This document shows, piece after piece, positions 11,332-58,752 of a stretch of 64,000 nt of DNA. The notes beneath the pieces were generated by a model that was not told where the DNA came from, searched no databases, and saw only the letters and a list, made by a program, of their open reading frames with translations. The first letter of the stretch is position 1. Every line of letters starts with the position of its first letter. Source of the stretch: Syncephalis fuscata S228 (Eukaryota > Fungi > Zoopagomycota); NCBI GenBank assembly GCA_025786725.1, contig JAHLTZ010000015.1, forward strand, positions 248,001-312,000. The letters are read 5' to 3'. The position numbers and the translations under genes were made by a program.

Positions 11332-14300
11332 ATGGACGGCGATTTACCCGAAGAGCCGCAGGCTACGGTAAGTTTAACGAGAAAATAAGCGCTAGAGTCG
11401 ATAGAATAGCACATAATCAAATATATATATATATATATGTATATATAATACTAATAATAACAACAACGGCTATTTATAGGCTATAAACGAACCAGAAATC
11501 AGTGGAACACCCCGGTTCACTCTACTACGTAGAACACCTGGTACACGCGTTGATGGACAACAAAAGCAGCAAAAACAACAGCAGCAACACCAGTCAGCAA
11601 CACCAACCATGTTGGACTTGGAACAACAACAGTTGGCGTTATCACAACTGACTGGAGATCTATCTCAGCCTGTTGAACGAGCCTCATCAGTTACTTCATC
11701 TACAACAGTAGATACAGCACCCGATGACATAGCTGCTATGGATGCATTTCTTCTTACGGCCCTTAATAATCCACGCGATCGTATATTTCTTTTAAAACTA
11801 GATAAAGATATGGAGCAATTTATAATGGATACTAGGTAAATAATAGCAATGTTTATACTATAATGATATTAACAATATTATACAATTCAATGATATCATA
11901 TCTAGTCGAACACGGCTTGAATTCCCTCCATTAAACTCATATCAACGTTTAATTGTTCATAAAGTGGCTGCCTACTTTAACCTCTCCCATTCAGTAGAAT
12001 CTAACAAGAAATCAGTAGTTATACTAAACAAATGTGAAGAGTCAGCCATGTAAGCCATTTATGCTATTTATTATTGCACTAATTGATCGATTAATACTAA
12101 CAATATATTATTAATACGCAATTAGACCAACTTTACGATTCTATGATTTCTTAGAACAAGAAAATGCTGCACCACAGCAATCCATGCGTATTATGCAGCG
12201 TAATCCACTCATGAAACCAAATCATCGATCACGATCCAATGCAGGAGGACGCTTATCAAAATCATCTTCACAAATAAATCCATCAGCATCAAGTGATAGT
12301 GCAGAGAGTTCATCAGAGAATGGTAGAAAGTTTATGACGATGGAAGAACGCGAAGCAGCCTATCAAGCCGCACGGGCCCGTATATTTGGTAATACTGAAC
12401 AGGCCAAATCAACTACTGAAGAAGTTATTGTAAATAACACATCTATAACTACCGATATAAATACAGCTATTAGCGAAACTGGTAAAGAAGATACGGTATT
12501 AACATCAAATGTAACCGTTATCAATAATACTATCCAATCTATTGACACTACGCCTATTACTGCAACACAAGTTACTGCTACATCAGCTATAACATCTACA
12601 GAAACTATACCAGCAACTTCTTCGCCAATATCACCATTGGAGACATCGACATTAATTATTAATGAAGGCGAGACACTTACCTGGAATCCCAACCAGTCAA
12701 AATATCCAGGTGCACCAGCCAGCGTATTTGGTATGCATCAATTACAAGGTGCATTAATGGCGGCAACAGCAGCAACGCCTACAACTCCAAATAATATAAG
12801 CAATAATGGTCAAGGTTCTATATTTGGACATTATGACACTAATATGAATGCAGTTATTGCCGCATGGCAACAATCAGCGGCTACAGGTGGCGCATCTTCT
12901 TCTAGTTCTCCTTCTTCGCCTGGTGTGGTGCGACATCCTTCGTTAAGGAATGAGCATCGATCACATCCATCAATAAGTGGCCATCAAACGAGTCAACAGC
13001 ATCAACGATCCAATAATTACCATACAGCTCGTTCTAATCCGCCTCCTGTTATATCGTATGCTCGTGCGGCTTCTAATCATAAGAATCCAGTTACGGGTAT
13101 GCCACCATCAACCGTTGGCGCTAATCTACCCTCTAATTTAACAATGAATGGTACAATGTCATATGCCAGAGCTACAACAACTGCCAATTCAACTCCCCCG
13201 CCTATTCATTCACATCCAATGGCTTCAGTTGCTGCTCATCCAGTCACTTCATATCCAATGGCTCAATGGCCTTCATATGAAAGAGAATGGGCATATATGC
13301 AACAACAGCAACAGCAACATCAACAGCAGCGTATTATGTCTTATCCTCATGGTATGTATACAGCTCCTATACAGCCAAATAATGCTTACCCATTACCATT
13401 GGCCAATAACACGACTGTGCCTACTCCAAATACCACTACAGGCACTCCTGTTTCTAATCCTATATCATCCACTCCTACTATGATGATGGGCAATCCATGT
13501 GTTTATCCAGAGCGACCTTATTCAACTGGACATATGCCTTTTATGCACCCATCGGCATCTGCAGAGTATACTCAAATGCATCCACCAACACTATATACGG
13601 CAACTCAACAGCCAACTTATCCCATTGATCGTCGTCCTCCACCTCGTAATGCAGAGCTATTCGATCCCAATAGACCCGATCCAAGAATACGTCGTACATC
13701 ACAGCAACAGCAGATGCAACAGCAACAGCAGATGCAACAACAAATGCAACAGCTTTATCAACAGCAAATGCTGCAGCAACAGCAAATGCAACAGCAGCAA
13801 CAAGTGCACCACCAACAACAACAACAGGTACAATACACTATTGCACCAACAGCAATATCGGCACCATATCGAGGTCATAGCAATGGAACAGATCGATCAA
13901 CTAAATCACAATCTCGATATACAACACAAATGAATCGAGCAGAAAGCGACGATTCAGAAACAGGTTCAAGGGCCAGTACTGCATCTACAGCAACTACTGG
14001 TCGAGGAAGTCGATCAGGTAATAATCGTCGTAAAACAGATGGTTTATTATTTGACTATAGTGCACAACAGTCATACGAAGGTGTAAAACCCAGTGATCGT
14101 AAGTAGTCTACTATTTGTTAATAACAAGAACATTTATATTTATGATAATATTTATATAACACCATTAGCTTTACCACAAATATCTCATATACTCTGTGTA
14201 TATCCATTAAGTGATAAAGATACGCTAAGCGATCTTTGTGTGCCTAATGCGCAACTAAAACAACTACCTCCGTCACCACAACATCCCACTGGTTGTTTAT

Positions 14301-56947: not shown

Positions 56948-57183
56948 TGTATTGAATAGACAAGCACAAGCAATAAAGTGGGTTAAAGGGAAAAAATGGA
57001 AAACAATGGTGTGCTCGTGAGCAGTGAAAAGTGTATAAAACGCGTCTTTTATTAATAATCCCAAATCAATATAAATACACTTCTATTAACACTTGTTTAT
57101 ACGTTCTACATCATCCTTGTCTCTTTCTCTACTTGTACCATATAGAATATTACGCCTAACAATAGACCGATATACAGGTAAGC

Positions 57184-57245
57184 ATCCATCCATCCATCCA
57201 TCCGTTGATGTATCTATCCATTTATCCATCCATCCATCCATTCAT
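57184..57245. repeat. (CATC)n tetranucleotide microsatellite
   Basis: catccatccatccatcc...atccatccatccatcca. Confidence 0.85.
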
Positions 57246-57316
57246 CTATGTAGTTGTGTATATACATATACTGTATGCATAATGGCTGGTTGGCTGATGG
57301 CTACAATATTCGCTTT

Positions 57317-57419
57317 GATATGATGAGTGTATTGGATGTCACTACCGCCGACTGTAATATTCCTCGCAAGGGAGTATTACCTGTGGAAACTAAACAACCT
57401 ACTGCCTTCCTTCTGATCT
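57317..57419 (+). ncRNA. Box C/D snoRNA, snR52/SNORD83-type 18S guide plus a second D' guide
   Basis: Box C ATGATGA 57320-26 and box D CTGA 57413-16. Box D is preceded by CTGCCTTCCTT, antisense to 18S AAGGAAGGCAG. D' CCGA 57348-51 is preceded by TGTCACTACC, antisense to 18S GGUAGUGACA. Internal 10-bp GCAA-capped hairpin. Confidence 0.88.
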
Positions 57420-57861
57420 ATTTGATATTGTTGTTTAAACGATTATATTTGCGTATTTTACTAATAGATATGTATACTAATATATTGTTTATGATACTTT
57501 AGGTAAATTCTAAAACAAGACATGGACTATTTGTATAATAAATAATAGATAATAAATACGTTAATTATATATATATATATATGTCATATGCTGTAGTTTA
57601 ATATGTTTTGATCGTGTTATAATGATATAATCATTGTTATATTGCTATTGTTACGTATACACTTTTATTAGTATAAATGTCTATTGACTTTTAATTAATA
57701 AATAAAGTGCGATGAAATGAAAGAGAATTCACCAACACGCTTCTTTACCAGATCCCATATATTTATCACGCAATAACCGTAGCCAATTAGTCATTACAAT
57801 AGTATTCGGTGAGCAACCGACCTTTTACTGTTGTTGTTGTTACTGTTGCCGTTTAGTTAGA

Positions 57862-58752
57862 ATGTATTTCTTGGTAGGTAGATGTCATCGGTGGTCTAGA
57901 TGTTGATGGCTAAATAGACGCCCATCAACACAGAAAGAACTCTCACATACGGTGCAGCTGCATCCTATGTACTTTGGACCGCGTATGCACGAGTATGTAG
58001 AGATGCGGCTACGAGCCGAGGTAGAAGGCTCATGTTCTGGCCGATACGGCTATGTTGTTGCTGTGCTACATCTGAACAAAATGAGTCGCGGTCGCGTTCT
58101 ACCAAATATTGGTCTGGCCGACTTTCAAGCACGGTATACGGCCGTCGTGTTTAAGCCGTTTAAAGGCGAGGTTGTTGATGGTATTGTCACGACTGTAAAC
58201 AAGGTAAATAGTATTAAAAAGTACTTATGAATAACAACCACTACTAATAGAATATATTAGATGGGATTCTTTGCCGATGTAGGACCGTTACAAGTCTTTG
58301 TTTCCACACATGTAAGTAATATAAATGAATTAATAACGCGTATTATGACAATTACAACAACTATTGCAATTATTTCAATTATTACAATATCATTATTATA
58401 ATAATAATAATAATTAAATAATATTAGTTAATTCCAGCCGATCTTAACTACGATCCTAATGGTGATCAGCCATGCTATGCATCAGAAGACCAGGTAAATA
58501 TCTGGATACTATATAAAGAATGATAGATTATTTAGTATCAATGTATCTAGTTAATTCAAAAAGGCTCTTTGATTCGATTAAAGATTGTTGGTACACGAAT
58601 GGATGCCACCGAAATTGTAAGCAGATATCGATATAGTTATCGATTATCATTATTATTATTAGTATTATTACCAGCCTGCTTTCTTATCAACATCTATCTA
58701 GTTTGCCATAGGAACTATCAAGGAGGATTATCTAGGTGTTATCAGTCAATAA
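57862..58752 (+). CDS. RPB7: RNA polymerase II subunit Rpb7
   Basis: MYFL/KELSHTVQLHPMYFGP, VEGSCSGRYGY, FKPFKGEVVDG, MGFFADVGPLQVFVSTH, IRLKIVGTR and FAIGTIKEDYLG. Six exons. Confidence 0.97.

Follow-up and report, generated by a model that had tools for sequence, protein, structure and literature searches.

A divergent box C/D snoRNA of the snR52/Z13/U83 family with two predicted 18S rRNA guides, upstream of RPB7 in Syncephalis fuscata

The interval upstream of RPB7 in Syncephalis fuscata S228 raises the question of whether it encodes a box C/D snoRNA and, if so, to which family this RNA belongs, which ribosomal nucleotides it guides to and from what kind of transcript it is released. The interval lies in a 64,000-nucleotide stretch of contig JAHLTZ010000015.1 (assembly GCA_025786725.1, positions 248,001 to 312,000 of the forward strand), referred to here as the window, which also carries an eIF4A ORF, 100% identical to a protein of Syncephalis fuscata, and a 640-amino-acid ORF with a SUZ domain, for which a search at E<=1e-20 found no match. 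The original prediction placed a double-guide C/D RNA of about 100 nt in this interval, within the intron of a non-coding host transcript. Positions 57316-57421 of the plus strand of the window are confirmed as a genuine, conserved and transcribed box C/D snoRNA. With a probability of about two in three it is predicted to form a two-guide snoRNP of the snR52/Z13/U83 family that methylates 18S A431 (D guide) and A475 (D' guide) in Syncephalis fuscata.

The elements of the snoRNA are listed below. Alignment A2 comprises 85 relatives collected from metagenome contigs, model R1 was built from the same number of relatives with the window and L005 left out, and L005 is a metagenome contig carrying the orthologous unit.

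57316..57421, plus strand: box C/D snoRNA of about 105 nt, snR52/Z13/U83 family; match of the custom family model R1, single-copy
57303..57310, plus strand: external terminal stem, 5' arm, pairing with 57424-57431 in the MFE fold
57320..57326, plus strand: C box ATGATGA, read in the sequence and invariant in A2
57332..57339, plus strand: accessory element TTGGATGT, antisense to 18S ACAUCCAA (own positions 421-428) beside the D target; kept in L005
57337..57346, plus strand: D' guide TGTCACTACC, +5 position opposite own 18S A475; identical in L005
57348..57351, plus strand: D' box CCGA, the commonest D' box of the family, covarying with C'
57354..57380, plus strand: D'-C' hairpin of 11 bp including two G.U pairs, loop CGCAA, from sequence and fold
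57382..57387, plus strand: C' box (C'-like) TGTGGA, the family consensus, covarying with D'
57402..57412, plus strand: D guide CTGCCTTCCTT, +5 position opposite own 18S A431; in register with the snR52/Z13 and U83 consensus of Rfam
57413..57416, plus strand: D box CTGA, read in the sequence and invariant in A2
57424..57431, plus strand: external terminal stem, 3' arm, pairing with 57303-57310 in the MFE fold

The general organization is that of a C/D guide RNA. The C box is found at the 5' end and the D box at the 3' end, the external stem of the MFE fold brings the two together, and both the D and the D' guide have at least 10 nt of antisense sequence with the target opposite position 5. The snoRNA is present in a single copy in the 29.4-Mb genome, where the exact guide-plus-box strings of D and D' are also unique. 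A second guide for A475 or A431 was not found elsewhere in the genome, where matches with one mismatch occurred at the level of a reversed-pattern control. The predicted double-guide RNA was thus recovered with all its boxes and guides in place; its hairpin was correctly located, but what had been read as 10 bp capped by GCAA is here 11 bp with the loop CGCAA.

The targets were sought in the organism's own rRNA. The rDNA was taken from a genome contig (C187) with an 18S of 1979 nt, a 5.8S and a 25S of 3738 nt, and all three were scanned for ungapped duplexes obeying the position-5 rule. The D guide forms a perfect 11-bp duplex with the 18S and selects A431, while the D' guide forms a perfect 10-bp duplex, also with the 18S, and selects A475, the A of GGUAGUGACA. 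Both complementary stretches called for by the original prediction are therefore present in the organism's own 18S, and the accessory pairing that it had suggested beside the D target is likewise a real complementarity and typical of the family. The scan for further in-register targets of at least 9 bp found none for either guide in the 18S, 5.8S or 25S. An alternative D' box, CTGT at 57352, was rejected, as it gives no in-register rRNA target.

These matches can be weighed against chance. Both strands of the window were scanned for a C box and a D box separated by 50-170 nt together with a perfect guide of at least 10 nt, and only this locus was found, where 0.17 hits per window are expected from Markov shuffles. 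Shuffled guide segments reached the observed duplex length with p=0.0055 for D and p=0.011 for D'. About a hundred nucleotides are methylated in other eukaryotes, and on this basis we estimate that a chance 10-mer would land on such a nucleotide in approximately 2% of cases. A locus without functional RNA, in which short motifs have come together by chance in AT-rich intergenic sequence, would agree with the lack of any Rfam match at gathering thresholds across the window. Apart from the statistics, this explanation is opposed by the transcription of the region in the RNA run X1, by the architecture and D'/C' covariation shared with the family and by a conserved orthologue with compensatory stems, and it is extremely improbable.

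In a search of Rfam in E-value mode weak matches were obtained to snoU83 (RF01179, 20.8 bits against a gathering threshold of 50), snoU83D (RF01175, 18.3 against 55) and snoZ13_snr52 (RF00335, 16.8 against 47, full-length over model positions 1-101). The Rfam comparison proposed with the original prediction therefore did point to snR52/U83-type families, but every score fell below the threshold, and score is lost to the inserted hairpin of 27 nt and to divergence around D'. In the alignments to all three families the D guide adjoins CUGA in a register identical to that of the window. The RF00335 consensus in addition has GGAUGU a few bases past the C box, in the same position as the element in the window. 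The sequence that marks the D guide of the family, UGCCUUCCUU abutting CUGA, is present in the window and has its target in the own 18S.

The relatives were collected from metagenome contigs with a pattern consisting of the C box core, GGATGT and the D guide plus D box, which gave at least 120 matching stretches, with 89 unique sequences among the matches listed. The order of elements in A2 is C box, UUUCGGAUGUAAA, a variable stretch, CCGA/CUGA, GAGCGCAAAACC, AUGUGGA/AUGUUGA, UAUUUCCGU, D guide and CUGA; among the matches listed, GGAUGU is found 7-9 nt past the C box and a GCGCAAA linker separates D' from C'. Position 2 of the D' box and position 5 of the C' box covary, with C-G in 60, U-U in 13, U-G in 6, C-A in 3 and U-A in 2 of the sampled relatives. 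This is the expectation for stem II of a k-turn, and the covariation fixes CCGA as the D' box and hence the D' guide in its register. CCGA/UGUGGA is also the pair found in the window, whose loop CGCAA occupies the position of the GCGCAAA linker. Model R1 gave a sole match in the window, at 57316-57421 (20.1 bits, E=2.7e-5), which is also the best in the genome; this score and the test of motif order are partly circular, as the relatives were collected with a pattern that also fits the window. The second match of R1 in the genome (contig C312, 18.3 bits) has neither C nor D boxes and was dismissed. The snoRNA belongs to the snR52/Z13/U83 family, whose architectural hallmarks it carries, but it is divergent and is missed by the Rfam thresholds; the proposed relationship to snR52 and SNORD83 is upheld by the register of the D guide together with GGAUGU, CCGA and UGUGGA.

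Compared with snR52 of Saccharomyces cerevisiae (RF00335), the likeness lies in a D guide UGCCUUCCUU that abuts CUGA and serves 18S Am420, in GGAUGU past the C box and in the presence of two guides. The two RNAs differ in that the D'-C' linker is expanded to an 11-bp hairpin in Syncephalis, whose RF00335 score is sub-threshold, and in that the D' guide of yeast is directed to 25S Um2921 (PMC5199042) but that of Syncephalis to 18S A475. The Nc CD42 RNA of Neurospora crassa and human SNORD83A/B (U83) have an orthologous D guide (18S-Am417 in N. crassa, Am468 in human), but are listed with a D guide only, in contrast to the conserved second guide in Syncephalis. Nc CD42 is described as an intronic homologue of snR52/U83 (PMC2780460).

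The orthologue was found through the neighbouring gene. Relatives of RPB7 were sought with its second exon (window 57934-58203), and one close relative of this exon with 81% identity was obtained, on the two JGI metagenome contigs L005 and L006. These are identical around the snoRNA and were counted as one species. An orthologous unit lies approximately 200 nt upstream of RPB7 on L005, on the same strand. Its 5' part consists of the invariant TATA 8-mer, a GTAAGT donor, a (CATCC)n repeat, a 9-bp external stem, the C box and TTGGATGT; the middle of a D' guide unchanged in sequence, then G and CCGA, a hairpin of 9 bp with loop GCGCAAAA and a C' box TGCGGA; and the 3' part of a D guide and D box that are likewise unchanged, TACTAAT and a TTTAG acceptor. 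The hairpin differs from that of the window by one compensatory change, A-T to T-A, and its loop keeps the family linker, while the external stem is retained in the same place by a different sequence. The stretch that begins with the accessory element, includes the D' guide and ends with the D' box is the same in both species; the sole difference is a 2-nt insertion in L005, which interrupts neither the accessory element nor the guide. The spacers to which no function is assigned (5 nt past the C box, the stretch from C' to the D guide and the flanks of the intron) are only about half identical. The D' guide appears to be under selection, because the stretch from the accessory element to D' is kept while the spacers have diverged, as seen with one additional species.

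The identity of the two target sites follows from their spacing and surroundings. A431 and A475 are 44 nt apart in the own 18S, the same distance as human 468 and 512, yeast 420 and 464 and plant 424 and 468. A cross-kingdom table (PMC11542601) aligns Cm418, Cm462 and Cm414, and likewise Am424, Am468 and Am420, of plant, human and yeast respectively, and equates plant Am468 with human Am512, with an empty column for yeast. Arabidopsis 18S Am468 is assigned to SnoR17 (PMC8053127) and human 18S A512 is placed with SNORD70 (PMC5612246). Judged from these alignments, A431 is the equivalent of yeast Am420 and human Am468, and A475 that of human Am512 and plant Am468, for which methylation is predicted. 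The D target is the family target whatever the numbering, because the register of the D guide is the same in the three Rfam alignments.

The rRNA numbering of the original prediction agrees with both the 44-nt spacing and the table. Its statement that the Am512-type site is unmethylated in S. cerevisiae is borne out by the blank for yeast in PMC11542601 and by the complete yeast map, in which the 18S has no site between Am436 and Am541 (PMC5199042). Yeast snR52 guides 18S Am420 and 25S Um2921 in the same map, in agreement with the original prediction. The description of the organism as a basal fungus is also correct (Zoopagomycota, order Zoopagales). The term "animal-like" for the methylation is wrong, because plants methylate the same site (PMC11542601), and "ancestral-eukaryote-type" fits better for a site whose retained methylation in Syncephalis is a prediction.

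The D' guide is the less certain of the two. Its duplex of 10 bp is at the lower length limit and it overlaps the accessory element by 3 nt; the accessory and the D' pairing cannot both be complete at the same time, because TGT is common to both. In L005 the accessory element shares only 1 nt with the D' guide, compared with 3 nt in the window. An element of this type resembles the extra base pairing described for C/D snoRNAs (van Nues et al. 2011, PMC3116282), where a conserved sequence complementary to rRNA adjoins the methylation target; snR52 is absent by name from the main text of that paper. In Syncephalis the pairing overlaps the target of the D guide by 2 nt (the AA of ACAUCCAA|GG), and it differs from the described type in that the accessory element also shares nucleotides with the D' guide.

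The D' regions of the 89 sampled relatives, among the matches listed, were tested against the Syncephalis rRNAs. For 63 of these no in-register D' target of at least 9 bp was found, 13 had a D' guide of 12-15 bp to SSU G1595, which is the site of snR56 and yeast Gm1428, and a few had marginal matches of 9-10 bp. The A475 guide was present only in the window and L005/L006 and in none of the 87 other family members among the matches listed. In the single-guide alternative the RNA is a true snR52 orthologue that methylates A431 alone, the 10-nt D' complementarity is idle and the conservation of the stretch is due to the accessory pairing and to assembly of the C'/D' k-turn. The majority of relatives without a D' target, the listing of Nc CD42 of N. 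crassa with a D guide only (PMC2780460) and the short, partly shared duplex are all in agreement with this. It accounts poorly for CACTACCG, which lies outside both the accessory element and the box and is identical in L005 while other spacers diverged, and for the 2-nt insertion in L005, which spares the accessory element and the D' guide alike. A D' match in register has a chance probability of only about 0.011, and the nucleotide it selects is precisely one that plants and animals methylate (PMC11542601). A single guide is accordingly rated as quite unlikely, and the two-guide reading is preferred.

With two guides, the D' guide looks like a lineage-specific occupant of a family slot that changes freely. 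In the accessible text of Canzler et al. 2018 (PMC5824354), snR52 and snR56 form one fungal clan, CD_19, linked by switches of guide and target. The relatives agree with this in that 13 of the 89 among the matches listed have an snR56-type D' guide beside the snR52 D guide; the A475 guide differs from what is described for CD_19 in the accessible text in being confined, among the sampled relatives, to the window and L005/L006. The combination of an snR52 D guide with an A475 D' guide is new as far as checked against the accessible text of PMC5824354, and represents a known evolutionary behaviour. The proposed novelty of the combination holds in so far as it is absent from the 87 other sampled members, but it is small, because switching of D' guides in CD_19 is already described in that text.

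No homologue of SNORD70 was found, either as an RF00575 match in 57000-57700 (E<=10) or in the genome (E<=1). Human SNORD70 (RF00575) and Arabidopsis SnoR17 are assigned to the homologous adenosine, human Am512 and Arabidopsis Am468, but have no sequence similarity to the Syncephalis RNA, whose guide sits in the D' slot of an unrelated family. The Am512-type site has no known guide in the surveys of Dikarya, and the N. crassa survey (PMC2780460) contains no 18S Am46x site. A tentative reading, which we consider somewhat short of probable, is that an ancient 18S methylation (human Am512, plant Am468) was lost in budding yeast and survives in Zoopagomycota by means of a guide that moved into the D' slot of snR52. 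The move could follow the loss of an original gene of the SNORD70/SnoR17 type. If true, this would be a definite instance in which a modification survives the loss of its guide RNA through transposition of the guide.

The features of the transcription unit and of the neighbouring RPB7 gene are the following.

57070..57077, plus strand: TATA box TATAAATA, an 8-mer invariant in L005 (alignment A1)
57122..57177, plus strand: putative exon 1 or 5' leader without ATG; the left end is that of a 404-nt RNA contig, deduced from its length and the bin depths
57178..57502, plus strand: putative 325-nt intron with GTAAGC donor at 57178 and TTTAG acceptor ending at 57502; signals as in verified local introns, recurring in L005
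57181..57250, plus strand: (CATC/CATCC)n repeat just past the donor, in the same place in L005
57460-66 and 57476-82, plus strand: TACTAAT branch motifs, read in the sequence
57503..57594, plus strand: putative exon 2 or leader, with two AATAAA motifs (57538, 57551) and a (TA)n tract (57566-82); RNA only to 57525
57595..57873, plus strand: RPB7 5' leader and first coding exon, ATG at 57863; RNA-supported by an X1 contig that starts at 57595 and skips 57874-57933

The predicted TATA box between the genes is thus present, and the interval agrees with its description as lacking an ORF in that no ORF with any Pfam match overlaps the snoRNA region. In the relatives of RPB7 the translation of exon 2 has the Pfam domain SHS2_Rpb7-N. 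RNA evidence comes from one public run, X1 (2017), available as Logan contigs, in which minor isoforms are dropped. The run has the character of RNA, as each of the seven neighbouring introns is skipped, with GT..AG borders and on the correct strand, and adapters are found at contig ends. Two loose contig ends, at 57829 and 58650, come from joins in (GTT)n repeats. The depth is zero across the divergent promoter (56985-57121). A 404-nt contig maps to 57259-57525, and its length and the bin depths place it collinear to 57122, unspliced across both splice sites. The region 57122-57525 is thereby shown to be transcribed; a C/D snoRNA made from it would be a stable RNA of about 70-120 nt bound by fibrillarin, Nop56, Nop58 and Snu13.

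The prediction of a clean intron at 57178-57502 stands with respect to its splice signals, which are present and kept in L005, but the X1 contig is unspliced and shows no junction. The 57177>57503 junction is not listed in X1, and the depth of 57503-57525 is fully explained by the 404-nt contig; this search has its limits, in that two joints located in repeats were discarded, the donor touches a masked repeat (57174-57255) and a mature RNA is invisible in contigs. The verified intron at 58617 has the same GTAAGC donor, and TACTAAT followed by a YAG acceptor is found as in the seven RNA-verified local introns. The distance from the D box to the branch A is 65 or 49 nt in the window and 62 nt in L005. 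This resembles the dependence on position reported for intronic C/D snoRNAs of mammals (Hirose and Steitz, 2001). Recursive splicing at AG|GT (57502/57503) found no support in the RNA and was rejected.

We regard 57178-57502 as probably an intron. Most budding-yeast snoRNAs are made from monocistronic precursors that are trimmed by nucleases, and the locus could similarly give a TATA-driven precursor of about 400 nt in which the GT...AG signals are unused. The collinear contig from 57122 to 57525, without a joint or extra depth on 57503-57525, fits such a precursor, as does the length of 325 nt, four to five times that of the verified local introns (57-85 nt). Unused signals would not be expected to recur as donor, TACTAAT and acceptor in L005 amid otherwise unalignable sequence, nor to keep a similar D-box-to-branch spacing in both species; furthermore, rare isoforms are lost from contigs, spliced non-coding hosts are often unstable, and the two repeat-located joints were dropped from the X1 junction list. 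A non-intronic origin is therefore a possible but the less probable explanation, and an intronic snoRNA remains the preferred one.

The host itself may be a short non-coding RNA or the leader of RPB7. The non-coding host of the original prediction is a possibility that agrees with the lack of an ORF; the X1 contig is unspliced, and linkage to RPB7 in both species makes an RPB7 leader another candidate. With RPB7 as host the intron would be a real one in its 5'-UTR, and the exon 1 of 57122-57177 and the leader from 57503 would both belong to that gene. On L005 the snoRNA and RPB7 are again found together on one strand, although the gene on the other side is different (an aldo-keto reductase), and the distance from acceptor to the RPB7 ATG is only 128 nt; in the window, RNA cover of RPB7 already begins 92 nt past the acceptor, with the contig that starts at 57595, and the uncovered gap between the RNA contigs is 69 nt, very AT-rich and half masked. 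A separate unit is indicated instead by AATAAA 35-50 nt past the acceptor in both species and by (TA)n at 57566-82, which could be the own TATA box of RPB7, as the contig starts about 13-29 nt later. X1 contigs 2 and 3 are moreover separate, with depths of 241 and 539, and the more distant RPB7 loci have no such snoRNA: the linkage was found neither in L127-L129 (exon 58-62% identical) nor in the at least 120 metagenome loci of the family. An RPB7 host is on this evidence a serious alternative, though less likely than not.

The proposed course of events can be summarized as follows. The RNA would be made by Pol II from the TATA-driven unit that directly precedes RPB7, and the snoRNA would most likely be released from the 325-nt intron, whose branch site follows the D box at a distance of about 50-65 nt. 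A fibrillarin snoRNP would then 2'-O-methylate 18S A431 via the D guide, the universal target of the family, with the adjacent UUGGAUGU element probably assisting by pairing with the flanking ACAUCCAA, and the D' guide would direct methylation of 18S A475, a site unmodified in S. cerevisiae.

A snoRNA backed by conservation is hereby added to Zoopagomycota, for which the literature search found no snoRNA survey, and standard Rfam annotation misses it. It is otherwise ordinary, as turnover of guides in the D' slot of clan CD_19 is already known. The family data give clean covariation support for the non-canonical C'/D' pair UGUGGA/CCGA. The second guide predicts that an early-diverging fungus has an 18S methylation of the type found in plants and animals but lacking in yeast, and the predicted methylation of A475 would bear on how the sets of rRNA modifications were pruned during fungal evolution.

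The non-canonical C'/D' pair covaries in the snR52 family of box C/D snoRNAs. Across the metagenome family loci L007-L126, represented by 85 relatives in alignment A2, a D' box CCGA goes with a C' box UGUGGA, and a D' box CUGA with a C' box UGUUGA. The snR52 D guide and an snR56-type D' guide, directed at the yeast Gm1428 site, occur together in 13 of the 89 unique members, among the matches listed.

The organism's own 18S rRNA is 1979 nt long (rDNA contig G000:C187; L001 1081-3021 plus L130 1-280). Fungal 18S rRNA is usually roughly 1800 nt; the molecule is clearly longer than this norm and must therefore contain expansion segments.

Directly 3' of the putative donor lies a (CATC/CATCC)n microsatellite, both in the window (57181-57250) and in L005 (1113-1150), a metagenome contig from a relative with the orthologous snoRNA-RPB7 locus. 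The putative intron sequence around it is unalignable between the two. Possibly the microsatellite is an element that has been conserved, or else a repeat that has persisted. In both species a GT directly follows the putative acceptor:

window 57502/57503, acceptor junction, AG/GTAAAT
L005 1349/1350, acceptor junction, AG/GTGTAT

The contigs of the public RNA run X1 gave no evidence of recursive splicing at the window site.

Elsewhere, at 12184-14106 on the plus strand, the window contains an ORF of 640 aa that begins with a SUZ domain at its N terminus; a word-based protein search found no relative of it at E<=1e-20.

RNA supports an RPB7 leader of 268 nt or more (57595-57862), in which several short upstream frames start with ATG. 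In the X1 strain this leader has 1-nt insertions at four positions: 57623, 57632, 57639 and 57714. Within RPB7, RNA depth is zero at 58319-58419, where a repeat is masked (58381-58428) and no joint is listed among the RNA joints; the gap probably marks another intron, its joint having been removed by the repeat filter. The first two introns are:

57874-57933, first RPB7 intron
58204-58260, second RPB7 intron

RPB7 of L005 (1477-1851) reads as a single open frame across both positions, and counterparts of these two introns therefore seem to be absent there.
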